Positions 18,832 to 61,040 of a stretch of 64,000 bases of DNA are shown in pieces. The stretch spans positions 186,001 through 250,000 of the forward strand of contig NW_026929376.1 in NCBI RefSeq assembly GCF_032062105.1. The letters are read 5' to 3'. Within the stretch, counting starts at the first letter, position 1. Every line of letters starts with the position of its first letter. Source of the DNA: Saccostrea cucullata (lineage: Eukaryota). Position numbers and translations under genes: made by a program. The notes beneath the pieces were generated by a model, which was not told the DNA's origin, did no database searches, and was given only the letters and a program-made list of their open reading frames with translations.

Positions 18832-20747
18832 AATATTTCCCTCCAGGCGACAAAAGTCCTCCTCCCCGAGTGAGTTGTCAAATCGTTCCTCGACCTTGTC
18901 GCTTAGCCTCGCGTTTGATTACACAGTTACATTATGTTTCATCAATGTAAACGTCCGAACTTGTGGGATCCAGATGATTTAAACTCATAATTTCACAGGA
19001 TATAGATTTTCCTTACATCCGCGAACTCCCCGTTATCGAAATGTCGCATCACACGGACAGGGAGGAATTAGATCTATAGTGGCATCACTCCGAAATCTCG
19101 TACTTCTTACGCCGTATTACCAGATGCCTCGCTCACTACACCAGTACTTGTTCCTGGGAGTAAATATTGTTGCTCAACTCGCCAAAATCTCACAATTAGG
19201 TCTTTACTACTTCATAAATCACTAGCATATGTGCTGGGTGTCAGCGATACTGGTGCTGCTGGTACATATTCTACATCAAGTAATTATTTCATCTAGGAAT
19301 GAGGGACATATTTCCTACATATATACTTAATGATATTTCTGTTTGTACAATATACACACGGCGTATCACCCTGATGGCAGTACAAGTCAAGTCGCTGACG
19401 CAATATTTTCAGTCTGCGGGGAGTTTGAAGAGAGGTTTTGGTGACAGAGCGGGGATTGTCTTGCAGAAAAAAGGTGACAGTGCATCAAGGCTTGGAATAC
19501 ATTTTTAGCGATAATTCTGACATTTAGAAGGGAGGATATTATCTTCTTGAGAGCCTGAGATCGATTTAATGGTGTATCTAACAGCCTGGTGCCAAAAAAT
19601 ATCTGACACTGATAACGGTGTCTTTACATCAAGCCAACGACAAATTTACCGTTTACAACCAGAAAAATCCATATGTAAAGAGAAAACTGCATTTTGTACA
19701 TTTCTCAGACACTTTAATTATATAGATAGTGCCTTGCCAAGTAGGATTTATTATACATTATGGGATTTGATTGTTATAGATCTGTACGGTGTACAGGGTT
19801 TTGAAATAATTGTAATAATTTGATAAATTTGTTCTATTAAAATTACCATGGAAAATTTTCACGATTACAGCATTTTGGCGAAACAATAGCATATGTATAA
19901 CTCATATTTATCTCCGCCAAGGAAGTTTTGTATTTGATGTATCTTTATTTTTGCCCGTTTGTCTGTCTGTAATTGGTCATGTACATTTCTACATTTAAAA
20001 GATGCCTGGATATCCTTCGTTATATTTTACAGACCAACTATAAGTGCGTATATATGATGAGCCACTGTCTCAAGCCACGGTCCGGAGTCCGCATACCTAG
20101 AATGGGAGAGGATCGTACATTTTGGCCGTGGTGTGCGAAGATGATGATGAGCAAGCTAGGGTAAGCTCTTCCAAACTGCAAATTTTAATCAGGGATTTTA
20201 GCGTCAGAGCAAGCTAGACTGTCTTTATTATTCATTGAAATACGTCTAATCTTTGTCTATTTTTTGTTGATTTTTAATAAAGTGGCGTCTAAAAAAATCA
20301 AAATTCTCAATTATGATTATTTAAAAAATCTAAAAATTTTCGAGTGTAACTATCTGTCAAACACTCGATCAGAATTTCCTTTATATTTTTACAGCTCGGT
20401 AGTACATGTACACTCATCCGTATGTGTCCCCTGCCCTTACAGTGTTCCTCAACACACCCCTTCCTCTGAAAGCTACGATACGCATTAATTTTACGTATAA
20501 ATGGTCAAAAAGTAAAAATCACTTCGAAATACTTCATTTTTTCTTGTTTAAATTTATTCAATTTTCATTAATTATTCATTTTATTTATTTGTTAATTAAT
20601 TAATTAATTTATTTTATTTATTTATAGTGTATATGATAATAATATAAATGTGTCCCTTTCGAGGTCCTCCGTAGTTTTTTTTTCTCCTTTTAGAGTTATC
20701 TCCCGTATGCCGTTTACTATCAGTGGCCGGTGTCTATGGTATGACCA

Positions 20748-23477
20748 ATGGATAAGTTCCGTCTACTGGAGAACGTCCATACATCGCTTACCCCCGTCGT
20801 CACCGACGCCGCGCTGGTTCGTGGAGATTACATGTATTATCACTACGGCTGTGACGGGGTAGATGATAGGGTAAGTAATAACATCTGTAAGCGAATATTT
20901 TCTCTGTTTACAAAATTTTCCCACGTGTGGGAGGCTCACTACAGGTAAAAATGCATTCTTAAAAAATATAGCTCACTCAACTTTGGTATTTAGAATAATG
21001 AACTCACTGACAAAATAAGTACCTCGACGATAAATGAAATACTGAAAAAAATATTTTAATTATTGCCTTTAGTAATCACTCGGTCAAAATTGATACGGTG
21101 TCTGAATAATTAAATATTTATATTAAAATAAAATTGTACAAATCCTTCTTTCAAATTGAATCAGCATGTTTTAGGGACAAGGCACGTATTATCTGGGGCG
21201 GGGGTGGGGGTGGGGAGGGGGTAGTCGCTGGCTCCCAATTTTTTTCCTAGCTGTATATTAGTAGCTCGCTGGTCTAAAAATTTCAGTGGATGGATGACCT
21301 GTCAGGTCCGTCTGTGCAAAATTAAAATTCTTTGTTGATAATTAGATACTTTTTTTTCAAAAAGTCAGAAAATGTGTCTTTTTACTGTCTATTGAGATTT
21401 TTATTAAAGATTTAAAATTTTATCCAATTTTGAAAAAAAATTCCCTCCCACCCTCCCGTGTTTGAAACCCTCCAGACGGCAATTTCAAACAAGCAATTTT
21501 TAAGGATGGCCGTGGTAGTCTCAGTGTTTAAGACAATTCATTAATTAGCATCTTTGAATAATTTTATACGATTTTTGAACACATTGCAGACATGAGTATT
21601 TTCTATAAAAGTTAATAATAGGTAATTTAAAATTTATCAGGGATGGGGTTGTGGATATCGCACACTTCAGACGATGTGTTCCTGGATAAGAGGACAACGA
21701 GGAGAGAGCATGCGCGAAGTTCCATCACTAAGGAAAATTCAAAACGCACTGGTTGCTATGGACGACAAGCCAGACTCATTCGCTGGTTCCAAAAACTGGA
21801 TAGGAAGCTTTGAAATATGCATTTGCATTGACTACTTTTATGAGGTAAACTATATGCTTTAAGTTTTTATTACACGAAAATAGAAAAATCGAAATGAGCT
21901 TTCTGATCAAAGATTTTTCGTCGCATGTAAATTATTGCTTGACATGTGTCGCGGGAAACAACTAGGCGTTACAACTGACCATCCAAAATAAATGACGTAG
22001 AATTAACCGTTACTTTGGATTTCTAATATGTGCATTCGGGAAGAGTCCTAAGAATACGGCTTTACTACTTCCGGCCAACAGCGCCATTCATTATCCCTGC
22101 CAACATTCCCTTTCCCGATCAACGACATATTATATTTTTGACCCAAACTATGTGATCACAAATCTGCCATAAAAGACAAAATCCCGGTATTGAAGACATT
22201 TGTACAGTTTCCCTATAATGTGTGCTGGTTCAAATTTAACTTATCTTGGTCTTTTGGGATAACATGCTCTTACTGGTATAAATGACTATTATATTTTCTT
22301 TAAAGAATGTCAAATACCCTGGTACATGTTTAAAAAGCAATTTCTAGTATTTAATTTTGTACCTTAAGATATGCTAAAATTCTTTGGATTTTACTTATAA
22401 ATCAGTAATTTTATTTTGGAAGAATTAAAACAATTAAATCCAAATTAGATATGCGTTTAATATCTATTTCAAGGTTCCATGTAGGTTAATTCACGTAACT
22501 TCTGGAGAAAAACTGATTGAATATCTACCAGACCTTCAGAAGCACTTCCAGGAGATAGGCTCAGTTATAATGATGGGTAAAGTTTTCACTCTTTATCAGT
22601 TATTTAAGGTTTATTGACCCCTCTCATAAGAGAGGTAACTCGTACTAAGGTAAATAACTGTTATTTATTTTTTTTTTAATAGTCAAGTTAAAAGCTCATT
22701 TTTTTTTTCAAACTTTGCGCAGCAAGTTTTGTTGAATTATGTACATTTCAACTTCAAATTATTTGTTTTGTAAATTCAGGAAAGTCATAAAAATTAGATT
22801 TAGAATTTTATATGAGTGATTGAACAGTGCGGTGTTGAACCCTGTTTTTGTTGTGAAAAAAGTGACATCTACCAAAAAAATATCTGTAAAATGTAGTCGA
22901 AATAAAGAATTACAGAAATGCAGTATTATACTGACGGGTTTTTTTTGCCTGTTGTTATATGTACACAGGCGGTGATACAGACAACGCTTCCAAAGGAATA
23001 GTAGGAGTCTCCATGGAAAAGAAGTCCCTGCTAGTTATAGTAAGTACATTGTACCTTATTTATCTGTTAGCTTTATTGTCTTAATTGTGAAACGAGACAC
23101 AAATGGTCAGTTTGCTTTTATTGTTTTAACAAATTTCAGATGATATCAGAAAATAAACCTATTGAACAAAAATCAAATAAAAATCATGATTCATAAATAA
23201 TCCACCGAAATCCATACACGATTTATCATACCTTTTGATTTACTTATATTTGATAATTACAGTGTATAGTCTATAACATTACTTACTTTTTGATGGATTA
23301 TATAATAATATTCTATAACTTTTCTGTTTAATCTCGTTTAAGGATCCTCATTACTATGGAGATATTACGACTGTAACAGAACTCTATGACAAAGACATGG
23401 TATCCTGGCGGCCATTAGATTCATTTCTTCACCATTCCTTTTATAACTTTTGTTTACCTCAACTTAAAGCAAAGTAA
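20748..23477 (+). CDS. UFSP1: Ufm1-specific protease 1 (peptidase C78), 211 aa; exons 20748-20870, 21641-21844, 22474-22576, 22969-23039, 23343-23477
   Basis: Spliced frame gives [23 protein letters not shown] (catalytic Cys), [20 protein letters not shown] and DPHY (catalytic Asp/His), ending FYNFCLPQ. It is short and lacks the long N-terminal domain of UFSP2. All introns are GT-AG and in phase. Confidence 0.93.
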
Positions 23478-23615: not shown

Positions 23616-26443
23616 TTAACACCCATAAACTTCAACACGAAGGCCTGGTTTCCCGCCATTATGCCACGTGAGAGGAACAAACCGGATGAATCTTGCACTG
23701 ATTCTGCTCGGAAGGTGGTGTTTGACAACGGTGTCATAAGTACTGCTCCCAAAGAATTCCTATAAGAAAAAAAAATAGATGGCATGTTTTAATGAGATTT
23801 CTACACATAATCGCTCTTGTTACATTTATAATTTCCTAAATAATTAACATTTATTTTCGCTATAAATAATTTTTTACTCGAGTGATAAGGACCAAATCTC
23901 ACAACTTAGAAACAAGGAGTCAGTAAATTATAATATGCTTTAGCCTAAAACTGTTTCGGAAGATAAAAGTTTAACCTTTTGAGATCCATTACTTCCGATG
24001 ACGTCATGGAAGTTGTTTCCGTCAGTGCTATATTGGATTTTATAGGACAGAGTGTAGTAGGTAGATGAGCGATATCCTTGTGTTGCTATGGAGTAGACCA
24101 CACGCACTTGTCCCAGGTCAACCTAATCATACAAAGATTTAAAGATTAGTGAATTTAATGAAAGGAGCTGTGAAATGATTGATTGATTGTAACTATGTTG
24201 TTTTACGTCCCATTCGAGAATATTTCGCTCATAAAAAGACATCACCATATTCAGGTGAAGGGCTTCAAGTTTTGATCGTTACTCGGCACTTACGGCCATT
24301 GAGCATTAATGAGCAACGAGGGATTTTTTGTGTCAACTTTACGTCTACCCTGACACAGGGCCTCGGTTTTTACACTCTCATCCGAAGAACCCTTGTGAAA
24401 TGATTGAATATAAAAAGTTTTGATACTACTGCCTCGATACAACGTCTCAGACTATGCAGAACATTGGCAGTTAACAATTCCATTCAAATATGTGTGAAAG
24501 TCAATTCTTACGGTACAGCTGTATAAAAACATGTATGAAAGCTCATGACCAAGAAATTTTTTTCAAAAGAAGATCAAACCCAAGGTCTTTGTCATGAGAT
24601 CAAAATGAAATATGAAAGCTATGGCATCAACCGTTCAAAAGATATAGCCAAGGATAAAGTTTTTGTGAACTATCTGACAGATAGACATACCAAAATCTGT
24701 ATACCCTTGAATCTTTGATGTTTATTTTTTAGTACGTGTAATATACAGGTACGTATAATCATGATTTTATAAACCTGTAGCCATGAGTTGGAAGTCTCTC
24801 CTATCCATCCGTCTGAACTGTGTAGTCGACCATTGGAAGCGAAATGGTTGGAGAAAGTGTAGTGTGCTGACATTTGGGCATCAGGAATTGTCTTTTTGGC
24901 GTAGTCTATACCAAATGCATTTGCATCACAGCCTAAGCAAAGAATTTAAAAAAAGGTCAAAAATGCAAACTTGCATGGCTGCAATGGTATCTACTTCACT
25001 ATTTATACTTAAAATCATTTTTGTTACATACGCAGTTCACAGCGTTTGCCACCATAATATGTAGAGCATGCGCATTTGTAATTTCCAAAATCGTCTGAAC
25101 ACGTTCCGCCATTTTGACATGGATTGCTAGTGCATTGATCTCGTTCTGCAAAAATATGACGGTATCCTTATTTGATAAAATCGTTTTAATTAGATATTCT
25201 CTCGCATTGTTGTTTTATTTTTATATAATTGAGAATTAATTAAATAAATGCTCAAAAATAAATTAAATGTTTAATAGTTTGAAACCTCTAATATCGATAG
25301 AAAATGTTCCGTCTGCGTATTTTCCATGGCGATCAGTGGCTCGTATTCCGAACGTGTATGAAGCATCTATATCGGGTGCTGTGCCACTGATGACACCAGT
25401 GGTAGAATTAAGAGAAGTTCCGGGAGGAAGATGGCCAGAAATTACTTTATACTGTATGTTATTGAAATCAGACTAAAACTGTAGGAGGAGTAGCATTTTG
25501 AAAGAATTTCACAGAAATTTCTATTTTTAGTAACCACGGCAACACCGTTCATCGAAATCAAAATCCGACACACAGAATTGTGTATCTTAGTGTAGTCTAC
25601 TTGTGTGCCAAGTTATATTGAAATCAAAATAAAACTGTAGGAGGAGTAGCATTTTGAAAGAATTTCACAGAAATTTCTATTTTTAGTAACCACGGCAACA
25701 CCATTCATCGAAATCAAAATCCGACACACAGAATTGTGTATCTTAGTGTAGTCTACTTGTGTGCCAAGTTATATTGTAATCAGAATAAAACTGTAGGAGG
25801 AGTAGCATTTTGAAAGAATTTCACAGAAATTTCTATTTTTAGTAACCACGGCAACACCATTCATCGAAATCAAAAACCGATATACAGAATTATGTATCTT
25901 AGTGTAGTCTACTTGTGTGCCAAGTTATATTGAAATCAGACTAAAACTGTAGAAGGAGTAGCATTTTGAAAGAATTTTACAGAAATTTCTATTTTTAGTA
26001 ACCACGGCAACACCGTTCATCGAAATCAAAAACCGATACACAGAATTGTGTATCTTAGTGTAGTCTACTTGTTTGCCAAGTTATATTGAAATCAGACTAA
26101 AACTGTAGGAGGAGTAGCATTTTGAAAGAATTTCACAGAAATTTCTATTTTTAGTAACCACGGCAACACCATTCATCGAAATCAAAAACCGATATACAGA
26201 ATTATGTATCTTAGTGTAGTCTACTTGTGTGCCAAGTTATATTGAAATCAGACTAAAACTGTAGAAGGAGTAGCATTTTGAAAGAATTTCACAGAAATTT
26301 CTATTTTTAGGAACCACGGCAACACCATTCATCGAAATCTAAAACCGATACACAGAATTATGTATCTTAGTGTAGTCTACATGTGTTCAAAGTTATATTG
26401 AAATCAGACCAAAATTGTAGGAAGAGTAGCATTTTGAAGAATT

Positions 26444-26476
<33 letters not shown>

Positions 26477-27580
26477 CGGACGGACGACGGACGCATTACT
26501 ATCGCATAAGCTCTTCTGGTCTCTGACCAGTAGAGCTAAAAAAGTAGCGTGTTTTTAATAATTTTTTTTCTACTTAGCATCCTTATTTACATATAAACAA
26601 TCCATTATCAAGCTAAATATTTGAAAATATTTCCTTTTCTTCTCATCATTAATTTTGTCGTCAATGTCGAACAAGTTCACTTTGTTTAATTACCACAGCC
26701 TCCACAGACACAGCTATTTTTGTTCCGGAAGTGAACGCTCCCAGTGATCCATGGACCGATTGTTTCGTCCATATCGGGGGAAGACTTTTAACTTTCTGAA
26801 AATATTTACTTTTTCATGAGGAGGAAATCATAGATCCATGAAAAACTACCAACTGAAATAATTTTTTTTTAAAGTAAAAAGTTAGTACTAAAAAAGTAAC
26901 AAGTTTTTGTACATGTAGCCATGTTATTATCTTATAAAAAACACTATACCTCTATAAATTTTCGGAGATCTGTTCCACCAATGATCACGGTTCCTCCAGA
27001 CCCTGGTTTTAGAATAACATTACCACCCACTCCTGCCTGTCAATAGAGGTATTAGTAATACTTTTAAACAAATACAAGGGAAGTAATTGAATCTTAAGTA
27101 AGGCAATGCCACTTCTAACCTCAAATGTGAGATCTCCCCCGGGCTCTGCCGATACATTTACATTGGGGTAGTCAATCTGGAAGAAGCTGAAAAAACACCA
27201 CAGAGATATAATCAAGAGAATTGGTAGAATTTTTGCGAATGAAAAAAAAGCAAACGTTTTGTTTTCAAATCATATTAATGTTCATAAAAAGCAAAAACAA
27301 AATAAAAACAAAAGTGAAAAATAAACAGCATTAATCTAAATACATGTACAGAGTAGACAAACAAAAATGACAATAGTGCATGAGTGAAAAAAAGAAAACA
27401 AAACAATTTTTTATGAAATGCCTCATGCCACTCATGTAGAACATCTGGCAAAATTAAAAAAAAACATTTTATCCAGTGAGTTCAAACTATCTTAAATGTA
27501 TATGAATATAAATGTTATGTTTACCTTCCATAAGCAATCCCAGGAAGACAAATTATTGAGAATATAAAATACTGAATCAT
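23616..27580 (-). CDS. Paralogue A: secreted SP + cubilin-N-like + He_PIG-like Ig + EGF + F5/8C protein (~346 aa; exon 5 damaged at its 5' end)
   Basis: Exons 27580-27525, 27186-27120, 27036-26950, 26795-26694, 25451-25286 (cryptic acceptor), 25145-25032, 24932-24775, 24122-23976, 23759-23616. Translation MIQYFIFSIICLPGIAYG..SLPPIW..SGHLPPGTSLNSTTGVISG..CTSNPCQNGGTC..IPDAQMSA..WLQVDLG..ARFIRF..LRVEVYGC*. Confidence 0.8.
24175..24400 (-). mobile_element. SINE fragment (same family as 54170-54445)
   Basis: ttttacgtccc..cgagaatatttc.ctcat...ctcggcactta.ggccattgagca...gacacagggcctcggtttt...tctcatccgaag resembles 54177-54348; (TGAT)n tail. Confidence 0.6.
25458..26542 (-). mobile_element. HINE/Helentron element with a tandem array of 156-bp units (~6.3 copies), 3' end deleted
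   Basis: Minus strand starts ttttagctctactggtcagagaccagaagagc (hairpin), then a (GTCT/GTCC)n microsatellite; unit starts at 25464, 25620, 25776, 25932, 26088, 26244, 26400. Confidence 0.9.
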
Positions 27581-27810
27581 AACTTAACTCGCCATCGATG
27601 ATGTGATTAAAATGGGCAACGCATTAGAAAACTACTTCCTTGGCAATGACCAAATCCCTATATTTACAAAATAATTAATCATTCCATTTATTTTATTAAT
27701 TGCCTTAAATGTATTCTCTTTGCCCTGATGATTTTGTTTCTAGAGACCTAAAATTTTGCCTCACGCCTCTTTTTCTTTGGCATGACCTTGAAACATGCAA
27801 TCTCAAGGTT

Positions 27811-29077
27811 ATGAAAATGGCTTCCAGGCTTGTTCCTGTGGTACTTTTCCTAAGTAGCATTTTGTGTGATGATGGGTTTGTAAATTTATTTTATGTAATA
27901 CAGCCGTGTCGGAAGAGACAAACCCATGATGCAAGTATTCCTTTGATTAGAAATTTTGACTAATTTTCTATTTTCTGTAGTGTTTTGGACATAGAATATC
28001 CAAGTCTTTCTATTCATGCACCTGCCGATGGAGACATTATTTTACAGGTAAGTCGTGATAAAAATGTCTCTATCTCAGAAAAAATAACATCTCGAAATAT
28101 ATTTTTAAAGTTAAGTAGAGTCATATGTACGTAATGACGGTTAAAGAAACTGTTTGTTTACAACAAAGAGACTGACAGCAAAGTCTGTCCTCATTGTAAA
28201 AGATCATGTTCTCTCCTTTAACTCTACCTTGAAAATATTTTGCAAGATATTGTAATATTGATTTAAATGAAATCAAATTGGTTTTTTTTTCTAATTTTAG
28301 TAAAAAGCAATGTTTGACTTTGACAGTAGTTCAGTTGTTGTTTCTAAAGTTTTAAAACAATGACTTCTGAAATGTTTATTCTAATAGAAGAATGTTACTG
28401 AAGAAAATACTTCATTATGCTTTATATATTTTCTTTCTAAACTTATTTTTTTCAGTCTGGATACGGTCTAAAAGATGTATACATCAGCCCAGGCCCTAGC
28501 GGCTCCGTTATATTTGAAAATCAAGATATTTTAAAAATCATAGAGGTATCACTGATCCCGCCTGTTAAATACATGTCAAATGTACATTGTTATCCCACAT
28601 AATTTATTAAAATTATATCTATAAATAGCGTATATATATATTTTTTAAATATTTGATAACATCTTTTTAAAAGGTAGCAAAAAGCTTGCCTCCTGTATGG
28701 TCAAAGCATGCACACATGGGTTTCTTTGGAACATTCACTGGTGAGCAACGGATTAACATCAAACTTGATGCAATAGTAAGTTTTCTGCAAACTCCAAGCT
28801 ATTAATTCAAATCACATTTCATATATTTTTCTAGCTGCAGAACTGTAGCTCTCTGCTTGAGAAAATTCGGACACATAAAGCAGAGAGCTACAGATCCTAG
28901 CGTTGTAAAAACCTTCGATTTACGCCGACGATTTTTTGTCGCTACTTTAGGTATTTATTTCGTGTAGTTTAAGCTTTCTCTGGCTTTTAGAAAATGTGTA
29001 TCCTGTAATTATTCATATATTTACGCCTAACTCTTATTTTTTATACTTTATTTACCTTTTAATGGTCCGAAACAGTC

Positions 29078-29113
<36 letters not shown>

Positions 29114-31227
29114 TTTTGTAATGTCTGTTTAAAAGAGTTCCATTTCGACGTCCGTAACCACAAACAGTCATTTGTTAGCGTTGATAGGTAAGTAAATTAT
29201 CAGGAATTTAAAGTTAAATGTATGATTAATTGTAAAATACCATTTTTAAAGCTGGGAAAAGTATAAAATACAAGAAAAAATGCCCGACGTGAGCGACAAA
29301 AAATCGTCGGCGTAAATCGAAGAGTTTTATAATGCTTGGATCTGTAGCTCTTTGCTTTATCTGTCCGAATTTTCTCAAGCAGAGAGCTACAGTTCTGCAG
29401 CTAATATTTTTCTTGAATAAAAAATATTAATCTAACATACAAAGTCACAAAGTATGATTACCCTTCTCATATCTTTAAACTAGGACCCCGAAGGTACAGA
29501 TCTCCATTTCATGATTGTATCTGGTGATCTACCGCAAGGAGTATCCCTAAACAATGTCACAGGTTACATAGAAGGTGTGATTCCGGATGTAGAAGAAATT
29601 TTCAAATTTGGAGTTCGTGCTATTGATGAACATGGAAAATATGCTGACGCAATCTTTAAAATGGAAACTGTTGGTATGGTTTCTTATCATAACTGTAAAA
29701 TTAGGGACAGAAGATATGTTTAAATTGTTTTTTATTGCAATGTAATTTTATTCTTTTCTTAAAAATTTGAAGTGAAGGACCATTGTCAGACAAATCCTTG
29801 CTTGCATGGCGGATCATGTACAGATACCAAAGGTTGGTTCAACTGTACCTGTCGAAGTGGATATGGAGGTCCCAGATGTGAATTTTGTAAGTAAATGTTG
29901 TTCATAAAATCTTGATTTACAATTACGTTTTTCTATAACCTGTAGAAATTATGTTGCACAACAACTTTTTTAAAGGACTATCAGTGGCATACATATATCG
30001 TATGTAACGACACAATGTGTATCAAAACGAGGCCATACAAAACTTGCATGTTTCAATAAAACATGTATTACTCGTATTATACTTAATACATGTATACATG
30101 TTTACATAAATTATTTCACATTTCAGTATTGTATTTCAGATTTTAATGATTTACTTTCTTTGCCCACTACAGCTTGTGCCTCCCAAGCATTGGGAGTAAG
30201 TGACAAAAACAAGATTCCAGATGCTCAAATGTCTGGTTACCTTACGTACAGCTCATACTTGGAATCAAATGGACGATATCGCGCTTCTGGGTATGGATGG
30301 GTGGGATCCAACAGCAACTCATGGTTACAGGTGGATCTAGGTATTCACAGATTTGTAAGGTTTATGACCGAATGCAAATAAAATTTAAGTATGCAGCCAT
30401 ACAAGGCGATAAGACTGCACATCATTCGGTTAAAAAGTAAACAAACTCTCTACTCCTTCTTTAATATATTCAGGTAGAAATACTAATAAAACATACTGGA
30501 TAAAACATAAAAATGAAGAAAAAAATCGTAGCTTTTCAAGCAACTTAAAAGCAATTCTACATGTAATTTAATAATCATATCTATTCAAAAACATGTTTGT
30601 TCTAAATTCCCTTTCCTGGAAAAACACGAATAATGCAATCTGAATAAAATTTGATTTGAATAGAAAAAAATTCTAGCGTAATTTTATTAATTTGTTAAGA
30701 ACAATTTATAAGGCATGTTAGGCAATTTAGTAAACTTGGTATTGAGTTGCTTAATTTATTTTGAAAGGTAACCTGACTAAAGTGTATGCAGTAAGGAATC
30801 AGGGCTACAGTTCCACGTACTATAGTCGTGGGTATACCCTCTCTGTTAGCACAGACGGCACCTCATTCCTGTCCGTAAACAACACTAATGGAGGAATACA
30901 TGTAAGTACTAAGTAGTACCATGTCTAATTCTGCTTATCTGATCCATTTGTTTCTTCATGTATAGCTGAAACCCTTTATTGTAGTACCTGGTGGTATTGA
31001 ATAACAACGACTGTCTAATTTTACTGACACATGCATGAAGTATTTGAAATCTCTCTAAATATCAATGGTGCTTTTTTTTCTTCTTCCAGACCTTCTCTGC
31101 CTCCACAGGAAATTACCAGTACTCACTTCCGGTTCCTGTAGATGCGCGATTTGTTCGATTTCACCCAACTTCATATCACACTAAACCACAATTTAAAGTA
31201 GAACTCTATGGATGTCATTACCAGTGA
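27811..31227 (+). CDS. Paralogue B: secreted SP + cubilin-N-like + He_PIG-like Ig + EGF + F5/8C protein (355 aa)
   Basis: Exons 27811-27875, 27981-28047, 28456-28545, 28674-28775, 29484-29673, 29773-29886, 30173-30340, 30768-30901, 31090-31227; 1068 nt open frame; AATAAA at ~31281. Confidence 0.88.
28832..29403. mobile_element. MITE with ~110-bp TIRs and a 9-bp TSD (Mutator-like), central (TA)n
   Basis: TIR TAGCTGCAGAACTGTAGCTCTCTGCTTGAGAAAATTCGGAC...; TSD ATATTTTTC at 28823-28831 and 29404-29412. Confidence 0.88.
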
Positions 31228-31689
31228 CACAGGAAAGCGAATCATAACGGAAATGATTACATTGTTTCCAATTTCTTTCAAATAAAATGATCTTTTGAAA
31301 GAACTTTTATTTTATTCATTTATTTTTATCCCAGTAATAGTAGTAAATTATATTGGCAAATTTAGTTTGCTTCTTCGAAAATTACGAGTAAGAACTGATT
31401 CAGAAGCATAGTTTGTATTGGATGACATATACATGCACCAATTGAAACTGAAATGGAAATGAAAGCAAATACGATTTAGCAACTATTGATGATTAAAAAA
31501 TCTTTATGGTAAGAAAGCATTATTGAGTGATATTGCATTGCATCATTACAATTAAAAAATAATTTCTACGTGAGCTTAATTTTGGCTTAGTAAGTGGGAC
31601 CATCAACTCGCGTAAATTGCGTTCTGCCAAACAATTAATTGCATCATTAGGGATTTTCAAAAGTTGCAAAGTCAATCACGTTTTACTCC

Positions 31690-32666
31690 TGACGATGTTC
31701 TGAAAACATATCTCACAGGATGAAATATCTGAGGGAGAGTAGATTCGAAATTGTTCAGATCATGACCCTTGGGCTTCGATGTGGCCACAGTAAGGAATCA
31801 AATTTTGAAATTGCATTATATAAGTAAATCTTTTTTCACAATAACCACTGTGCCAAAAATGATGAAATCTTGTGGATGCTTCCTAAAGTAGTTTTGATAA
31901 TAAATCGTTTAAATCGTGCACCTCTCCCCCCCCCCCCCCCCCGCCCCCATCTAGGGAATCAATAGGCGGAGCCGCAACAGGAAATCAAAATTTTACATTT
32001 TGATATACAGGAATTTAAATTATTAAAATGAAAAATCGTCTCAAGAACCACTGGACCGGAAATGGTGAAATATATGTTGAAGCTTCCTTAGGTAGACAAA
32101 AATGCAGATTTTCAATTGTTCGAATCATGGCCCCGGGGACAAGGGTTGGCTCACAAGAGGAAATATTAAAGTATCACATTGAAATATATCTTAAATAAAT
32201 ATAGACAAAAGTGTAGATTCTAAATTGATTAAACAGTGACCCCTTCAAGTTGATACGTTTGGGCCACAATAGTTAATCGAATTGAAATATTTAAAAGTAT
32301 CTCTTTAAAAACCACAGGGCCAGAAGTTGTGAAACTTATGTTGAAGGTTTCAAAGGTATAGTGTATATTCTGAATTAATTAAAGAATGCCCCCCGGGTAT
32401 GGGCTACAATGGGGAATCAAAGTTTTACATTGATATACGGGTATTTAAAGAAAAATCTTAATTATTCTTCTTTTCAAGAACAGATGGGCTAGAAAAAAAA
32501 TAAAACTTATGTGATAACTTCATATGGGAGATTGGATTTATAAATTGATTGGATCATGTTCCCTCGGGAGTAGGTTGAGACCACAATAGGGAATCACAAT
32601 ATGTCGGGGGGGGGGGGGGTTGAAGCCCAAGTGACTCAGGTGAGCGTTGTGGTCCTTGGGCCTCTT
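31690..32666 (+). mobile_element. Degenerate HINE with ~5-6 decayed Cg170-like ~166-bp units
   Basis: Repeated tagattc..aattgtt...atcatg.ccc...ggg.ccacaa..ggga.tcaaa units; terminal actcaggtgagcgttgtggtccttgggcctctt. Confidence 0.7.
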
Positions 32667-32829
32667 TTTATATTAGTTGTCTTAAACATACATGTACATT
32701 AATCAGCTGACCACAATACTTATATCGATTTTATTTTTGATCAAATCAATGTTAACAGTCAGGAAGATATTAATAAAATAATGTACCACAAAAAAAGTTT
32801 ATTGTCTTTTTATTTGCCGTTATTCTTAT

Positions 32830-35040
32830 TCAAACATCACATCCATACAGCTCCACTCTCATTCCTGGCTTACTGTGGAACGTTTTGGGTATAAACTTGA
32901 CAAACCTCGCTTTGAATGGCGTCAGAAACGTGTGTTTTATCACGGAGTTTACGTTACTGCTCCCGCTAAAATCCTAAAGCAGTAAAAAAAGAGTATTATT
33001 TATATCCATTTGACCTTCTTTCAACAATTAAGATTCAAATCTTAAACATTTTTCAATACTGATTAACGACGTATTTATTATTCTTTACTCAAGCATGTCT
33101 TGATGGATAGATATATGGAGGGAATCATATATTTACCATGACCGAGGTTCCGTTTTTGACGTCATAGAACGTGTTTCCGTTCACGCTGTATTTGATCGTG
33201 TACGCCAAGATGTAATAGCTGGAAGATGCGTGGCCTTGGTTTGCCACAGCGTGTAACTCCATTTCTCTTCCAAGGTCCACCTACAAAAAGAATGTCCATG
33301 CTGAGCTATTTCACTGAATATTAACTCGCAGGACAAAAAAAACAACAACATTAAAACAGTTTTAAATTACCTGCAGCCATGAGTTTGTATTTTGTCCCAC
33401 CCATCCTTGTGGAGAGTGAAGTCGACCGTCTACACCGGCGCTATCGTCATAGCAGTAGTGACAGGACATCTGAGCGTCCGGGATTTTCTTCCTGTTCTGG
33501 TCAATTCCAACAGGTGCAGAAGCACAGTCTAAGGGATGATATATATCGTATGCTTAAGAGTGTGACGTTACTGAAATAAGGCGATATTGATGCAATTGTT
33601 ACATGTAGGATAATGAGGAGTAGTTACTTAGTTGACATGTTTTCCCGCCATACGGTTTCACGCATGCACATTCGAAATCTTCAATATCGTCACTGCAAGT
33701 TCCACCATGTAAACATGGTGAGCTTAAACATTGGTCTCTCTCTGAAAGTTATAAAAGAAAGGTGCGGATCATGAAATCCAAGCAAAACTAAAGACCTGCT
33801 CCGTATCAAACTGTTTGAAATAGAAGATTAATAGCTGATTTACGGACTAAAAATTACTTAATTATCATGCAGGACAGAAAAATATATTAAAGACATAGAA
33901 GATGCCAATCATTTTGGTATCAATAAATACTTTGAAACATGGTGTACTGTGGAAAAATAAAATTCAAAACATTTTAATTCATGTTATTATAACCTCTGGT
34001 ATCAATCGAAAATATCTGATCAGCATATTTTCCATGTTTATCTGTAACTCGGATTCCAAATTCGTACGTTGCATCGACATCAGGAATGCGCCCAGTTATT
34101 TCACCAGTAAGTTTGTTCAGATGAACACCAGGTGGCAGTGCGCCAGATACTTTTTCATATGTAACAGCTCCTTTTTCAGGATCCTGTATTATAAGTTAAC
34201 TTTCAAGTTTAAGCAGTTTAGTATAATCAGTATATAAAGAGAAAACACTTGTATGCATGTACTTGCAGATTACACACCTGAGCTGAAACGCTGAGAGACA
34301 CCGTTTTTCCTCCTAGGAAAGTTCCTAGAGTTCCATGCGGGGATTTTTCACTCCAAACAGGCGGAAGGCTATTCACAAGCTAAATGCAATATAAAAAATA
34401 TTGCCAGGTTAAAAAAGGTTAAAATGTTGAATTTGGTAGTATTGTATATGTATCTATTTTGGTGCCGTGACCAGGATCATAAATACCTCAAAGAGTTTAA
34501 GCATATCTGTTTGTCCGATGAAAACTGTCCCATTGCCTTGTGGAATCATTATTATGTCTCCCCCATTTGGACCAGCCTTTTGATAAAAAAAATATTGATC
34601 AACAAAAAGTCGAAAGAAATGCAGAATTGATAATTTTAATTTATTGCCAAGAACTAATGATCTATAAAAGGCTTAGTTTCATCAATTAAAGAAATAAATT
34701 TGTTAGATGAAAAAAGTGTTCACCTTTATAGTAAGGTTTCCACCTTGTTCTGCCGTAAAAAATACATCTGGATAGTGAATATCAAAGAAACTGAAATAAA
34801 TTTTATAATTTAGCTTTAATTTGAAGCAGATGCCTTATATGAAAATGTATCTGTTTTAAATCTAAATTACGCAATTACATATTTTCAAAATGTACATTTA
34901 TGAGTCATGAACGTATTCATTAATTCGATTCTTATTCAAAGAATTCAGAAAGCAAAAATCAAAAACATTTACCTTGCAGCACAACTTTCAAATCTGAAAG
35001 TTAAAATAACAGAAAATGCTACAAAGAATAACTTGGACAT
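32830..35040 (-). CDS. Paralogue C: secreted SP + cubilin-N-like + He_PIG-like Ig + EGF + F5/8C protein (358 aa)
   Basis: Exons 35040-34973, 34790-34724, 34576-34487, 34379-34278, 34183-33994, 33741-33628, 33528-33371, 33280-33137, 32973-32830; 1077 nt open frame MSKLFFVAFSVIL..SLPPVW..DPEKG..SGALPPGVHLN..MRVELYGCDV*. Confidence 0.9.
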
Positions 35041-35456
35041 CTTGGTTTATCCTTCGTCTTCAGGTAATTCCAAATGTGTATCTTCGAGCAAGATATTAAT
35101 CATCTAAACCTCATTAGAAACCAAGGATTGCTACCGTGTTTGGAGTTTTTCTCTAGTACGATTTACAGGTAAACTGTGTTTTTCAACTATTCTTCAAAGG
35201 GTAAGAAAATTAATTTCACTCTTAAATTGATATTTATGAACGATTAATCACTTAAAATTACTATTGGTCTAATTGTAATATTAACAAAAAAATGAAAAAC
35301 TAAATAAATGAAAAATTATTTAATTAAACCAGCATAAAACTAGAAAAAAATATATGAAGAATAATGGTAGTTTGTACATCTCAAAGAATTTACCGACTTA
35401 CTGATTTTTTACTGTCATATGATAGACGTATAATATTTTATTTTAAACAGTGCACC

Positions 35457-48400: not shown

Positions 48401-51400
48401 TAACGTTTTCATGAGATCAGTAAGATGTTAAAGAACCCATTTCAAATCGATAACCATATCGAAATATTTACCGTTTTTGAGTTATAAAGCAAAAACTTTC
48501 GAGCGCCCTTGACCCCTAATTTGAGGGGCCAGCCCCTTTTTAATAATGTCAAATAATAGATCTTAAAATTATGCACAATATTTGTGAAATATGTCTTAAC
48601 AAATTATTTTTAGTTTAAAAGATATACGAGGAAATATATGTAAAATTTGGCGCTTTTGGGCATTCTCATTTTTGACCCCTACCTAGCACCGTTTGGAGCG
48701 CAGAAATCGAAAAAGAAAAACCGATAGGCACAACTTCAATTCTTCTAGTATTTAAATGCAGTAGACATTCTGCTCCAGCTTTTGTCGTTTCTGAGCCTTT
48801 GTCTGGAAACGAACAGTACCAAATTTTCACTTAAAGGGAAATAACTCGAAAGCGGAAGGGATTTTTTAAAATGTATGAAAACATTTAATTGAGTTTTGTA
48901 ATGTCCAAAAACTCTGAAAATTTGAACGAAATCCGTTCAGAAATGAGCGAGTTACGAGGTCTCAAAGTTGGCGTCTAGGAAAAAAAAAAGAATAATAGGG
49001 AATAATCTTAACCATCAGAATCAGTAGAAGGTCTTCCGCCTGAGCGAAAGACCTTAATAAATCAATTATTGCATATACATGTACATGTACATCACAAGAT
49101 TTATAGAACATACATCACAAGATTATAGAACATACATCTCAAGATTTTGCATATACATCTCAAGATTTTGAACATACATCACAAGATTATCGAATATACA
49201 TCACGAGATTTTGCATATACATCACAGGATTTTGAATATACATCACAAAATGTTGTATATACATCACAAGGTTATCGAATAAAGCAACGTTTTAGACGCC
49301 ATATCCAACAATTATATGTTTTTATTGAATATTTTTCTAGTCTCTTTTGATCCCAAATTGATTTGTAGATTTTTTGCTTCTTATTATTAACTTGAGTAAA
49401 TGACAAGTTTAACTGTCAATGCTGCTGTAATTTTTGTATTCCTCCATTAAAAAGCTTTGCTTTATAAGGTCTGGGCTTCGTTTTTCTTTAAAATAACAAT
49501 GGGCTATACATGTACATAAGGAGAAAAAACATTTTACAGGTACCTGGATCCGGAAATCTAACTTTTGAGATTGTTGCTGGATCACTTCCACCTGGAGTTT
49601 TCCTTGATTCAGCAAATCGCCGGATATCCGGTATTGTACCAGATCAAGATGCTGAGTACATCTTCACTGTAAGAGCCAAAACCGAATACGGAAAGTTTGC
49701 AGATGCCGTTTTCCGATTTGATTCTTACGGTAAAGCCTCGAAATCTATATATTAAAGCATAAAACTTGTGATGCAATTATGGAATGTTTTGGTGGATTTT
49801 TTTCGATTTTTTTTTTAAGAATCTGATCAATGTCAAGAAGAGCCATGCCACAATAATGGTGTATGTAACGATACACGTGAGGGAATAGGCTACACGTGCA
49901 TCTGTAATGGGCACTATGGAGGACTTCAATGTGATACAGGTAATAATGTTCTATCTCTTACCATCTTTAATTTATATCCGCTGAAAAAGTCTAACAAGAG
50001 GTTAATACCCTACATGCATTTCTACGCGTCTAATATATCAAACATTTTAAAATTTATTATATGATACCAAATAAGTATTTTAACCCTTTCATATTAGTAA
50101 CTGAGAATATCAAATGGAACACTACATATCAAGAGTTTGTATTGATTATAACATAATTTCGATGATTTTACCTAGATTGTAGATTAAACAGTTTAGAAGT
50201 TAGAAACAAAAATGTCATACCGGATGCTCAACTGTCAGCATACTTATCACGTAACCAATCTCTGGCCTCGGAGGCGAGGTTTGATAGCAATGCTTCAATG
50301 GGCTGGTGTGGGGAAAACGCAAACTCATGGATACAAGTAGATTTGGGTATGATATCAATTTGAATATGTTTACAAACTAAATCCATGATTTCAAGGTGTG
50401 ATGAAAAAAAATAGTTATAGTACTATACGTATTACAGGTGATGAAGGGAGAATATTTGCTGTGACCACTAAGTCTAGGGATAGTAACCGATTCATGAAAT
50501 CTTTCTCACTGTCTTGCAGCACTGATGGTACAAGATTCTCAGACGTCCTGGATACTAACAATACAATAGCTCACGTAGGTTTATATATAGTATATAATAT
50601 TTCGAAAGGGCACATGCCACTCAGATACTTTCTTATTGTTATGTAACGTTCTATAGATTAGCAAACGTACTTCAACTTCAGTACGATGTTGGCAAACATA
50701 TATTTCTAAAGGTTTATTTACCTGTCGATCACATGGTGATGAAATTTAAAAATGATGTCGCATATATACCGAATGTAGTTATTGAAAAACATTCAAAGGC
50801 CATACCAATTTCTAATATAGTTCGTCGGATTCGCCGCTTCTATTTTCAACAAATCGAAATTATAATATTATAAAAATAAAATCCGCGCGCGCGTCCAAAA
50901 ATATCCGAATATATTTTTTTTTCTCGACTTTTTTTTGGTATCTGACAGAAGCGCGGGGTTTCGTTAGTTTGTTTGTACTTTGTAGCAGTCTGTGAAGTTT
51001 TGCAAGACGCCCGTGTAACTGCTCGTATGTACCTGGGGTGAGCAATTAGCATAGGGGCTATCATTTTTGGGGGTCAGGCTAGTTGTTTTCTGCAAGGAGG
51101 TAACCCGTCGGGCTAGTAAAAAACATAACTACACACGCAATACATGACAAGCACAATCAGTATTTTCACTCGTTTTTTGCTATAAAATTTCCAAGCAGTT
51201 AAAATTTTCCAGACAACATGCTCCTACTGTCAATAAATCTCCAGAATCTTATCTGTTTTGCACTTCTAGCTTACTTCCAAAAACGATCGTTTTTCCTAAT
51301 CCGAATTTCCTCTATTCTTCCATTCATGGTAAATACATGCAGATATCTCATTAAATTATTTACGATCACCCAATCAACTGAAAGATAAGGTTTTTGTGAC

Positions 51401-52287
51401 TCACATGAAACATATTTCCAGTGTATTTAATGATATAAGATGAAATCAAAATGAGCTAATAGTGCAATGATCAGAAAAATGGAAGATAATTTATTTAAAT
51501 TAATTTTAATTTTCTTTCATAATAATTTATGCATGATTAATATTGAGAACTTTTAACTGTAATTTTAAAAAGAATGACCTCAGTACCCTGACTTTTTCAG
51601 CAATTAATTTTTTCTCAACATTACATGTAGTATTTATTTTAATTTTTGCCCCTCTATGTGGGCTAGTAACTTTACTTGGGGCTGGTAACTTGAAAGCTGC
51701 CACTAGCCCGTGGGAAAGTACTTGATTTTTGTTCAATTGCATACCCCTGTGTACTGTAGTTATAAACACTGGGTACAAAGTAGTTCCGTACATAGCAAAA
51801 GAAATGGAATCAGAGGAGATGTTTGACAAAAAAGAGAAGAACTTAGAAATTTTTGCCACTAATATTAATTATATTCGCTCGCCTCATGATTTTGAAACCT
51901 GAAATAAAAAATAATATTTGTAAAATATTTTCGCTCGCTCGCCTCACTTTTTATTTTTGAAAATCCGAAGAACTATATTACAAACTGGTGTGGCCAAATA
52001 TAAATATTATACTGTCCAAGATATGGCAATGTGTCACAATTTATCATGGTATATGTCAAACTATTTTGTTTATAATAGGAGAAGCAAATGATAGCAGAGG
52101 GCATGAAGGGGGAAAGAATATAAACTATTGATACTGATTCTTTCTATATCAGGTATTTTCCAGTGGTATTGGGGCTTTAACCCAGCCCCTTCCTGATCCT
52201 GTCACGTGTCGGTTTGTGAGACTCCATCCCAAGTCCTACAAAGGTCATCCCTGTCTTAAGTTTGAACTTCATGGCTGTGTTCCTTAA
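42499..52287 (+). CDS. Paralogue E: secreted SP + cubilin-N-like + He_PIG-like Ig + EGF + F5/8C protein (364 aa), most divergent copy
   Basis: Exons 42499-42581, 42976-43042, 43155-43244, 43716-43817, 49540-49729, 49820-49939, 50176-50346, 50438-50574, 52153-52287; 1095 nt open frame; AATAAA at ~52327. Confidence 0.87.
43400..43653. mobile_element. GC-rich MITE remnant in intron 3 of paralogue E
   Basis: GC-rich core gggggcttcgccccctgggcccccaccagggc...gcccccagacccc ending cctggatccgctcctg; left terminus not recognisable. Confidence 0.5.
44035..49302. mobile_element. TIR element with 21-bp subterminal minisatellite arrays, carrying a nested insertion
   Basis: TIR TATGGCGTGTCAAACGTTGCTTTATTCGA / TCGAATAAAGCAACGTTTAGACGCCATA. 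21-bp unit AATCTTGTGATGTATGTTC.. repeated at 44065-44430 and inverted at 49088-49275. Confidence 0.8.
44734..49057 (-). mobile_element. ~4.3-kb non-autonomous Helentron-like element nested in the TIR element
   Basis: One end: hairpin ctcgttgc-aaa-gcaacgag plus aggtcttccg. Other end: aggtcttccg-cctgag-cgaaagacct subterminal IR. Decayed ~160-bp aaggtcaaggtca units at 44810-45720; no coding ORF. Confidence 0.65.
50798..51995. mobile_element. MITE with ~34-bp TIRs in intron 8 of paralogue E, with a probable second MITE nested at 51033-51749
   Basis: ggccataccaatttctaatatagttcgtcggatt versus reverse complement ggccacaccagtttgtaatatagttcttcggatt. Inner element ctggggtgagcaatt...aattgcatacccctg flanked by tgtac on both sides. 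Confidence 0.65.
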
Positions 52288-52634: not shown

Positions 52635-54132
52635 CGAAGGGCCAAGCCCTCATTCAAGGGGAGATAATTGGGAATTAATAAAAATTTGGTGGCATATTTT
52701 AAAAATCTTCTTCTCAAGAACCACTGTGCCAGGAAAGATGAAACTTATGGGGAAACATCCTCAGGTAGTGTAGTTTCAAGTTTGTTCAAATCATGACCCC
52801 CGGGGGTAGGGCGGGGCCAAAATGGCCGACCAAAGTTTAACATAGAAATATATAGGAAAATTCTTTAAAAATCTTCTTCTCAAGAATGACAAAGCCATAA
52901 TTCATCATATTTATATGGGAGCATGCTCAGGTAGTGTAGATTCAAATTTGTTCAAATCATGACCCCCGGGGTAGGGCGGGGCCAAAATGGCCAACCAAAG
53001 TTTTACATAGAAATATATAGGAAAATTCTTCAAAAATCTTCTTCCCAAGAATGACAAAGCCATAATTCATCATATTTATATGGAAGCATGCTCAAGTAGT
53101 GTAGATTCAAGTTTGTTCAAATCATGACCCCCGGGGGTAGGGCGGGGCCAAAATGGCCGACCAAAGTTTTACATAGAAATATATAGGAAAATTCTTTAAA
53201 AATCTTCTTCTCAAGAATGACAAAGCCATAATTCATCATATTTATATGGGAGCATGTTCAGGTAGTGTAGATTCAAGTTTGTACAAATCATGACCCCCAG
53301 GGGTAAGGCGGGGCCAAAATGGCCAACCAAAGTTTTACATAGAAATATATAGGAATTTTTTTTAAAAAGCTTTTTCTCAAGAATGACAAAGCCATAATTC
53401 ATCATATTTATATGGAAGCATGTTCAGGTAGTGTAGATTCAAGTTTCTTCAAATCATGACCCCCGGGGGTAATGCGGGGCCAAAATGGCCAACCAAAGTT
53501 TTACATAGAAATATATAGGAAAATTCTTTAAAAATCTTCTTCTCAAGAATGACAAAACCATAATTCATCATATATATATGGAAGCATGCTCAGGTAGTGT
53601 AGTTTCAAGTTTGTTCAAATCATGACCCCCTGGGGTAGAGCGGGGCCAAAATGGCCAACCAAAGTTTTACATAGAAATATATAGGAAAATTCTTTAAAAA
53701 TCTTCTTCTCAAGAATGACAAAGCCATAATTCATCATATTTATATGGAAGTATGCTCAGGTAGTGTAGATTCAAGTTTGTTCAAATCATGACCCCCGGGG
53801 GTAGGGCGGACCAAAATGGCCGACCAAAGTTTTACATAGAAATATATAAGAAAATTCTTTAAACATCTTCTTCTCAAGAATGACAAAGCCATAATTCATC
53901 ATATTTATATGGAAGCATGCTCAAGTAGTGTAGATTCAAATTTGTTCAAATCATGACCCCCAGGGGTAGGGCGGGGCCAAAATGGCCGACCAAAGTTTTA
54001 CAAGATATATATAGGAAAATTCTTTAAAAATCATTTTCTAAAAAATAGCAAATCCATGATTGGTCATGGGACTACTTTTGGATTTAAACTTTACAATAAA
54101 AAGCCATTTTCTACTTTTTCCTACCTTTAGTG

Positions 54133-55133: not shown

Positions 55134-56158
55134 TTAAGAAGATTTTTCTTTCTTCGAAGAGCCTAGTTTAGTAGCAAGAGCAATATCTTGTAGAAGAGAA
55201 TCCAACCCATAACCCAGCACAGAGGCCGACTTCATGTTGTAAGCCTTAAACGACGGGTGGATAGACACTACGATTGGTCGCCCTTTCAATCCATCCATGT
55301 AGGATTTCTTAGACTTGGTGTGTACATATTTCTTATGAGAGGGAAGAAATGTTGACTTCAGAGGCAATCTTTTAGCAAAGTTTTTCCAGTACGATTTTAC
55401 CTTTCTTTTTCTTGGATATCTTGCTTTAAATTTTCGTTTTTTATTTATTGGATAACCGTGAAGCATCCACCTGTATCCCGAACTTTTCCCAAGGTCGTAA
55501 TGGTGTCGTAGTGGTCGATAATGATGCCTCTTAGTTTGATGTTGATATTTGTGATAACGATGCCTCGTAGTTTTATGTTGATATTTGCGATAACGATGCC
55601 TCTTAGTTTTATGTTGGTATTTGCGATAACGATGCCTCGTAGTTTTATGTTGATATTTACGATGGAACTTTGTGGGAACTACTTTTTTCAGCGGATACTT
55701 TCGTCTATGAGAGTAATTTTTACCTTCCTGTTTTCTTCTTTTCGGGTAAGGCTTCTTTGTTATGGGTTGAATGATGTTATCATTGTTTTCAGATTTCAGC
55801 GATTTTACGGACTTGAAGGATTTAAAATGTCTCATCTTCTTTCTACCAGAATGAAGTTTTCGGCCAAAGTGAGAAACCCTGGCCGATCTGTAGCGCATTT
55901 TTGTAGCATCACTCAAGATAACTAAAACATGAAAAAATATATACCGGTAACCTCAGAAGCAAAACTTTTGTATTTATGAACTTTGATTTTTCTAAAACGA
56001 AACGATCCTTTATATGCCTAAATCTAAATTAAATACCACAATAATTAAAAAAAGAGATAATTACAAATGTTAAAAAGACACTAGTTGGTCTGTTAAGGAA
56101 ATGAACAAATACCTGCTAAACTCAAGAGAAGAAATATCCCAAGGATATACTTGGGCAT
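55134..56158 (-). CDS. Secreted highly basic Lys/Arg/His/Tyr-rich repeat protein, 277 aa; exons 56158-56113 and 55921-55134
   Basis: A phase-1 GT-AG intron joins the signal peptide MPKYILGIFLLLSLA-V-ILSDA to the long ORF; four 12-aa repeats [H/Y][R/H]KYQH[K/Q]T[T/K]RH[R/H]; no Cys. Confidence 0.82.
55505..55665 (-). repeat. 36-bp coding tandem repeat, 4 copies
   Basis: gataacgatgcctc[g/t]tagttttatgttgatattt[g/a]c repeated with a 36-nt period. Confidence 0.9.
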
Positions 56159-60098: not shown

Positions 60099-61040
60099 TC
60101 AACCAATCTTTTTCATAAAATCTTTAAACTTTTGATTGACAGCATGTTTTCGTTCTTCGTTAATCTGCAGTTTGCAGTTCATTATTCGTTGCCTCTGGGA
60201 GGCCATTGACATGGGAGCAGCACCAAATTTAGACTGTCCAGCAAGATGGGATTTCCACGCTTCAGAAGTTACAGTAGGTCTTCTCTGGTTCAGAATCTCG
60301 GATATCCCAGCATTCCATCCGAGTGACGTAGATGCGCGGCGTTCCTCACGAGCATTTCCTTTGCTACCACCATCAAGTGGCATCAATTGTCTTGTTAGTG
60401 ATTGGATATTTGCAGAACTATGACTGCGCACTCGCTTTGTTCCTTTTTCATGCAGACTTTCTCGTCTGGGTCGTCCCTGATTTGCTTTTATGAGTTTTCT
60501 CGTGAGACTTGACGACCCAGACATCCATGATAACGACGTGCTCTCGGAATGTAGCGACTCTTTATCTGAGCAGGGATCGTTTTCTCCTGCATTGTCTCTA
60601 TTCGGCAGAGTCGTCACAAAAGTGGCTCGACCGACAGGACTGCTTTGTGGGCGAACGGCGGAGGGTAAAGCAGAAGGAATGGATGACAAACTACTGGAAC
60701 TTCTGCTGTTAACAGCTGCCGACTGAGAACGTTTGAACCGTCTTTTCTTGCGGCTGACGATTCTTTCGCCGTACATAAAGCAAGGTCCTTCGTCCTCTCG
60801 TTCGTACTCTTCTTCAGAATCCGGTGCTAGGCCTTCAGGACTGTGTCCGCTACAATTGTTAATGTAGTCTAATGTCAGAGAGATCAATCGTATATCCTGG
60901 TTTATGACTCGTTTGGAATGAATTTTCTCCTTCTCCAGTAGATTTAATTTTCCTTGGAGTTTTGCATATTCGATGTTGTTTATTCTATAAGCTCTCTGTA
61001 TTCGAGAGGAACTAAAACTTGGTGTTTCTAATGCTGGCAT
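60099..61040 (-). CDS. Uncharacterised 313-aa protein: N-terminal coiled coil, Ser/Arg-rich disordered middle, short C-terminal helix; intronless CDS
   Basis: Long ATG ORF with coding-like GC content; acceptor cttacAG at ~61087 suggests 5' UTR exons; NNIEYAKLQGKLNLLEKEK..INQDIRLI heptads. Confidence 0.8.
   Translation of the reverse strand: MPALETPSFSSSRIQRAYRINNIEYAKLQGKLNLLEKEKIHSKRVINQDIRLISLTLDYINNCSGHSPEGLAPDSEEEYEREDEGPCFMYGERIVSRKKRRFKRSQSAAVNSRSSSSLSSIPSALPSAVRPQSSPVGRATFVTTLPNRDNAGENDPCSDKESLHSESTSLSWMSGSSSLTRKLIKANQGRPRRESLHEKGTKRVRSHSSANIQSLTRQLMPLDGGSKGNAREERRASTSLGWNAGISEILNQRRPTVTSEAWKSHLAGQSKFGAAPMSMASQRQRIMNCKLQINEERKHAVNQKFKDFMKKIG

Follow-up and report, generated by a model that had tools for sequence, protein, structure and literature searches.

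The locus treated here occupies positions 23616-52287 of a 64,000-nucleotide stretch of the oyster Saccostrea cucullata (RefSeq assembly GCF_032062105.1, contig NW_026929376.1, positions 186,001 to 250,000 of the forward strand; hereafter the window), and it raises the question of what a cluster of related genes for discoidin-bearing secreted proteins is built to do. Five genes, A (−), B (+), C (−), D (+) and E (+), follow one another in this order, each with nine coding exons (Table 1). Their predicted products of 353-364 amino acids (aa) share one module order, namely a signal peptide, a beta segment of ~55 aa, a He_PIG immunoglobulin-like (Ig) domain, an EGF domain and an F5/8 type C (F5/8C) discoidin domain. 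The family would form secreted heterotrimers of two chain types, type I and type II, in which a cubilin-type hub carries three discoidin heads for the capture of ligands by avidity; we give this reading a probability of about 0.55. The family is built wholly from known modules. An earlier sequence-only reading of this DNA could assign the architecture to no described family, and no account of the layout or of the genes was found in the literature searched, which did not extend to subscription journals; no paper naming the gene IDs of the family was found either.

The spliced models were built by script, and database queries were made with single exons or with natural full-length database proteins; in two alignments, window exons were entered as separate rows next to natural proteins. 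All frames are open, all splice sites show AG/GT, and the window contains no N stretches. For E, the model agrees in every residue (100%) with the RefSeq protein LOC134280647. Introns 5-8 of B and all eight introns of C, 12 introns in total, are joined exactly where predicted in RNA contigs of a near relative (four runs, mostly 90-99% alike), and orthologues of A and D elsewhere are full-length annotated or transcript-derived proteins. The five spliced nine-exon genes proposed from the sequence are therefore real. An artefact or pseudogene cluster is ruled out by spliced RNA, purifying selection and orthologues, and bacterial contamination by the introns, the animal EGF and discoidin domains and conserved synteny. 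Pairwise identity among the five proteins is 34-51%, in agreement with the strong divergence noted before. Intron phases match across the genes (2,0,0,0,1,1, then 0 or 1, then 0). The recurrent exon sizes described earlier were recovered in all five genes for exon 2 (67 nt), exon 3 (87-93 nt), exon 4 (102 nt) and exon 6 (114-120 nt); the size of 190 nt for exon 5 stands for B-E and fails for A, in which exon 5 measures 187 nt in the window. In A and C, intron 7 (boundaries 24775/24122 and 33371/33280, phase 0) lies 10 nt upstream of its place in B, D and E (30340, 39427 and 50346, phase 1), and this position defines the two subtypes, type I (A, C) and type II (B, D, E). Scallop, clam, Solemya and chiton share the type I position, and the offset is an old case of intron sliding.

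The deviating exon 5 of A has a local explanation. Its first five codons are replaced in the window by a 156-bp tandem repeat (25460-26443), and the exon is open only from an acceptor within the repeat. Compared with the allelic contig C12690, the window shows 99.6% identity on the right side of 25460 and 80-93% on the left; C12690 carries an intact 190-nt exon 5 together with an annotated protein to which window A is 95% identical. Because identity to C12690 drops at 25460 and exon 5 is intact there, position 25460 most likely marks a place where two haplotypes were joined in the assembly, and not a dead gene; the candidate reading of A as a pseudogene was rejected on the same intact exon. 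A second full cluster, in the order E-D-C-B-A, is present in the same assembly on contig C14363 (5900-51231). The D protein encoded there shares 79% identity with window D, compared with 92.5% for S. echinata and 82% for the Ostrea orthologue; it is more distant than S. echinata and about as distant as Ostrea or Crassostrea. This cluster may be an old duplicate or DNA of another oyster.

Regarding the beta segment, which has no Pfam family, a profile of 38 N-terminal segments was compared with 177,635 PDB sequences; the best match was cubilin (6gje_B, E 0.011; runner-up 0.55), spanning 43 positions and ending in a helix. An AlphaFold model of the segment gave 6gje_B as its sole match among 48,161 chains (Z 2.1, root-mean-square deviation (rmsd) 7.3, 53 residues aligned; a weak match), and Foldseek placed 6gje_B at rank 1-2 (E 1.6 and 5.4, likewise weak). 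Searches of PDB and Pfam with exon 2 or exon 3 alone, a PDB search with the N-terminus of one family protein, and ESM Atlas features for the family gave nothing informative, and the segment had no match among phages, viral contigs and PHROGs. The predicted local distance difference test (pLDDT) score in the monomer model is 34-51 for the beta segment and 83-98 for the other domains; such a low monomer score is expected of an intertwined oligomer. The type I beta segment is among the best conserved parts of the protein, with 58-77% identity as far as clam, Solemya and chiton against 48-60% for the discoidin domain. Three cubilin chains interlock through their N-terminal segments, which also dock on amnionless (PMC6283879). 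Homology between the two segments is likely, and the earlier description of two unrelated N-terminal modules gives way, for the beta segment and on weak scores, to a best match with the cubilin trimerisation helix. The amnionless gene of this genome was located on contig C16241 (74241-76863; three exons above the Pfam cut-off), and it is the only clear copy. A second, weak amnionless match occurs on contig C6925.

The second module was called a prokaryote-style Ig domain from the letters alone, and this identification holds. Exon 5 by itself matches He_PIG (PF05345) in 5/5 genes, above the cut-off in four of them, and full-length members score 29-40 bits against a gathering cut-off of 24. The nearest relatives found are metagenomic, phage and bacterial He_PIG repeats, including those of Pelagibacter phages, at 40-47% identity over ~93 aa. 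Solved cadherin domains match the family domain at no more than 20 bits per domain, and the tandem repeats and membrane anchor that mark the cadherin superfamily are replaced here by one domain and no anchor. With the He_PIG repeats of phage and bacterial surface or tail proteins (Pelagibacter phages HTVC104P and HTVC200P), the family has in common the full-length domain of ~95 aa and its N-terminal Pro-Pro-Val-Trp strand; unlike these repeats, the domain of the oyster family is single-copy, intron-split from oyster to chiton, and set inside an animal EGF-discoidin protein. A horizontal transfer of the domain between phage or bacteria and molluscs, in whichever direction, is plausible. Two other He_PIG-like matches in the genome, on contigs C16345 (68068-68283) and C2810 (42133-42291), score 35.7 and 25.7 bits and lie outside the family.

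Each protein continues with one six-Cys EGF domain (PF00008) and one F5/8C stretch (PF00754 at 63-72 bits, cut-off 28.2). The discoidin model has the jelly-roll fold, with Z scores of 23-24 against neuropilin b1 and factor V C2 (Z 23.9, rmsd 1.4); its terminal Cys pair is invariant, and its loops are Tyr-rich and conserved within each clade. In the B-type head, the two loops by which factor VIII C2 inserts into lipid are shortened, Ser/Tyr-rich and without long hydrophobic tips. Public databases name these proteins automatically as "lactadherin-like", EDIL3 or uncharacterized. A signal peptide followed by EGF and then F5/8C is indeed shared with lactadherin (MFGE8) and EDIL3 (Del-1). Unlike these, the family has one discoidin domain instead of two, ~150 additional residues in two modules between the signal peptide and EGF, and no RGD in the EGF domain (0/5 window proteins carry the motif, and 1/54 family sequences does so, outside EGF). 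Membership in the lactadherin/EDIL3 group was accordingly rejected, as the first reading had already advised. The lactadherin name is only a best-hit label because neuropilin, factor V/VIII and CASPR2 resemble the discoidin domain about equally well.

The range and age of the family can be judged from natural full-length homologues, which were found in Ostrea, Crassostrea/Magallana, Saccostrea, four scallops, Mytilus, Ruditapes, Mercenaria, Mya, Mactra, Dreissena, Solemya and the chiton Liolophura. A quick, midpoint-rooted IQ-TREE run separated type I from type II (support 100) and resolved five clades, all of which contain oysters and scallops; heterodont clams occur in A, C and D, mussels in A, B, C and E, and Solemya and the chiton in A. 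All nine exons are kept in the mapped scallop, clam, Solemya and chiton genes. These five clades across bivalves and chiton indicate that the paralogues are older than the main bivalve radiation and that the family is older than the split between bivalves and chitons, which took place ~500 million years ago. An oyster-specific expansion is ruled out by the tree. Against a Magallana-like transcript, the nonsynonymous rate (dN) is 0.11-0.16 (0.11 for C) with the synonymous rate (dS) saturated, and dN/dS is about 0.04-0.05; the family is under strong purifying selection. The sequence-only reading was thus right about an old, maintained family and wrong about a narrow lineage specificity. A word-based homologue search returned no gastropod, cephalopod or non-mollusc protein, a search that needs exact shared words and does not demonstrate absence. 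An all-protein HMMER search was swamped by multi-repeat He_PIG proteins and did not probe the range beyond molluscs at full sensitivity. The first homologue search returned genomic fragments only, the chiton family protein had no match in metagenomes, and an ESM Atlas cluster with the same domain set has 58 members, with Mollusca as the commonest taxon.

The gene layout provides a further line of evidence. A and B are divergently arranged on a short spacer, which is 249 bp long in Ostrea and holds a conserved AT-rich block of 39 bp. The C/D spacer measures 364-384 bp in S. echinata and Ostrea and 1241 bp in scallop; with the putative intron in the D 5′ untranslated region, the 5′ ends of C and D would meet or overlap. 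In one intronless contig, C- and D-type open reading frames (ORFs) stand back to back with 169 nt between them, which shows that both spliced RNAs existed in one sample with their 5′ ends meeting, and is no proof of a single transcript. The five genes recur in Ostrea edulis in identical order and orientation. Across oysters, clam, Solemya, chiton and, for C/D, scallop, a type I gene and another family member lie head-to-head, 230-1240 bp apart; in clam, Solemya and chiton the type I gene of the pair is of the A type. By score the partner is type II in oysters, scallop and clam, and only marginally so in chiton and Solemya. The type I/type II head-to-head layout has been kept from oyster to chiton. 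There is a precedent in COL4, in which head-to-head genes code for chains of one heterotrimer (PMC12141075).

From these observations the following mechanism can be proposed. A shared promoter would co-produce one type I and one type II chain, and three chains would interlock through a three-stranded beta-helix of the cubilin type and a short helical neck to give heterotrimers. The Ig and EGF domains may serve as arms that spread three discoidin heads, whose Tyr-rich loops would bind a repeated ligand such as a glycan, an acidic lipid or a matrix protein by avidity, with specificity determined by the combination of chains. The open face of the beta-helix may then dock on a partner, with amnionless as the first candidate, and route the cargo to endocytosis. 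The trimer, its stoichiometry, the ligand, the tissue and the docking are what we infer for the family. Secreted and multimeric proteins, as suspected at the outset, are probable, given the hydrophobic, signal-peptide-like N-terminus, the lack of any hydrophobic or transmembrane segment past residue 30 and the probable cubilin-type segment. Docking of the hub on amnionless, which would make the family an endocytic adaptor, is a tentative proposal with the odds against it; no report of a partner of amnionless other than cubilin was found. It is doubtful whether the proteins can be taken further as mollusc "mini-cubilins", that is, a second class of amnionless cargo adaptors with a cubilin hub, a phage/bacterial Ig arm and heterotrimers that combine type I and type II chains of bidirectional pairs, which would amount to an endocytic receptor with exchangeable discoidin heads.

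Several points weigh against the heterotrimer with a cubilin-type hub. The joint-profile E value of 0.011 is weak, a type II-only profile finds 6gje_B at E 0.063 and a type I-only profile misses it. The fold match at Z 2.1 is well under the usual level of trust, and the profile and the two fold searches partly share the information they draw on. The family lacks the long coiled coil of cubilin, its place being taken by a single helix of ~10 residues and then the Ig domain, and the docking strand of cubilin (residues 42-49) falls largely outside the aligned stretch. Head-to-head gene pairs frequently mean co-regulation and nothing more, and gene E has no partner gene.

Trimers might also work without membrane docking, as free soluble lectins or opsonins of haemolymph or mucus with the logic of C1qDC proteins or ficolins, a view that overlaps the trimer model. 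The absence of a transmembrane segment, the clade-wise conservation of the Tyr-rich loops and a discoidin fold common to CBM32 and discoidin I lectins (Z 13-18) would all suit such a role. Bivalve immune lectins, however, usually expand and turn over fast, and five 1:1 orthologue clades fixed across bivalves at the dN/dS given above are more in keeping with a conserved set of subunits than with an immune lectin that diversifies fast. In addition, the family is not named among the haemocyte markers in the main text of PMC12064177, which is a weak point. Free lectins or opsonins are rather doubtful.

Structural adaptors of a matrix (basement membrane, shell, periostracum or filter barrier), in which trimers would join end to end by the open faces of their beta-helices or would use their discoidin heads to cross-link matrix proteins, likewise overlap the trimer model. 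Open beta-helices do associate end to end (PMC6283879), the conserved head-to-head pairs resemble COL4 (PMC12141075), the discoidin domains of DDR are close structural matches (Z 21.8), and the range found, bivalves and a chiton, would be compatible with this role; but the proteins contain no collagenous, chitin-binding or acidic low-complexity segment, and literature text searches gave no mention in shell proteomes, which makes this alternative unlikely. A monomeric, lactadherin-like bridge to cells or vesicles exposing phosphatidylserine would require the beta segment to be an unrelated small domain and its cubilin likeness to be due to chance. The EGF-discoidin tail and the top Foldseek match of the whole model, lactadherin C2 (E 2e-11), point that way, as do matches of the type I profile to beta-propeller blades (8-10 bits apiece). 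Such a bridge is nevertheless improbable, considering the single discoidin domain, the near absence of RGD and the shortened, Ser/Tyr-rich loops of the B-type head, and it leaves the fixed type I/type II pairing unexplained.

Table 1. Features of the window (positions of the whole stretch)
Feature	Position	Strand	Details
Gene A, type I, 353 aa	23616-27580	−	exons 27580-27525, 27186-27120, 27036-26950, 26795-26694, 25472-25286, 25145-25032, 24932-24775, 24122-23976, 23759-23616
Gene B, type II, 355 aa	27811-31227	+	exons 27811-27875, 27981-28047, 28456-28545, 28674-28775, 29484-29673, 29773-29886, 30173-30340, 30768-30901, 31090-31227
Gene C, type I, 358 aa	32830-35040	−	exons 35040-34973, 34790-34724, 34576-34487, 34379-34278, 34183-33994, 33741-33628, 33528-33371, 33280-33137, 32973-32830
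Gene D, type II, 361 aa	35457-40447	+	exons 35457-35527, 35653-35719, 35808-35900, 36155-36256, 38645-38834, 38920-39033, 39260-39427, 40039-40169, 40298-40447
Gene E, type II, 364 aa	42499-52287	+	exons 42499-42581, 42976-43042, 43155-43244, 43716-43817, 49540-49729, 49820-49939, 50176-50346, 50438-50574, 52153-52287
Cubilin-type beta segment ending in ~10-residue helix (candidate), exons 2-3 of D	35653-35900	+	profile and fold searches
He_PIG/cadherin-like Ig domain, ~97 aa, exons 4-5 of D	36155-38834	+	PF05345
EGF (exon 6) and F5/8 type C discoidin (exons 7-9) of D	38920-40447	+	PF00008, PF00754
A/B spacer between ATGs, 230 bp	27581-27810		putative bidirectional promoter
C/D head-to-head spacer, 416 bp	35041-35456		D 5′ untranslated region intron probably inside, about 35201-35449
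156-bp tandem repeat (×6.3) and ACAG microsatellite, A intron 4	25460-26493		clips A exon 5
Insertion in D intron 4	36340-38330	−	343-aa ORF (37157-38185) without Pfam match; resembles a mobile-element remnant
21-bp minisatellite, present as inverted copies at either end of the long E intron 4	44085-44435, 49084-49281		
166-bp satellite array directly after E	52698-54061		
UFSP-like peptidase C78 gene beside the cluster	about 19000-22100	+	PF07910 at 21626-21859
B-box/beta-propeller TRIM-like ORF, 589 aa	3285-5051	−	
DUF7153 exon	7153-7563	−	
Long interspersed nuclear element (LINE)-type reverse transcriptase fragment	12172-13563	−	
Long ORF without Pfam match	55137-55952	−	very basic, His/Arg/Lys/Tyr repeats; adjoins 36-bp tandem repeat
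Long ORF without Pfam match	60102-61049	−	

Among the neighbouring genes in Table 1, the UFSP-like gene is fused with gene B in public models of three oysters (511-519 aa), which is probably mis-annotation or read-through.

If the heterotrimer with a cubilin-type hub is correct, the cubilin beta-helix, so far described for one receptor, would be a portable module for trimerisation and docking, and amnionless may serve more than cubilin. The five-member 1:1 set across bivalves, with a paired layout reaching the chiton, points to a core function of farmed molluscs that has gone unrecognised, for which nutrient uptake, filtration, immunity and matrix are candidates. Transcriptome papers that take these genes for "lactadherin/EDIL3" would draw wrong inferences. 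The family is, in addition, a possible case of an ancient phage/bacterial domain that became fixed in an animal protein.

Two further known systems offer a close comparison. In collagen IV, as in the present family, two subfamilies have persisted for hundreds of millions of years as divergent pairs that share a short spacer; collagen IV has no sequence relation to the family, and the heterotrimer is demonstrated for COL4 and proposed here. Cubilin, which forms CUBAM with amnionless (PDB 6GJE), is likewise an anchorless secreted chain that begins with a beta segment and a helix, with EGF downstream and ligand-binding domains at the far end. Its paralogous chains can form heteromers, as in Drosophila, where Cubn and Cubn2 occur in one complex (PMC8710305). 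Unlike the 460 kDa cubilin, the family proteins have ~355 aa, a short helix in place of the long coiled coil and an inserted He_PIG Ig domain, and eight EGF and 27 CUB domains stand against one EGF, no CUB and one discoidin domain. The family is therefore not a cubilin by domain content, and it probably works like a miniature one.

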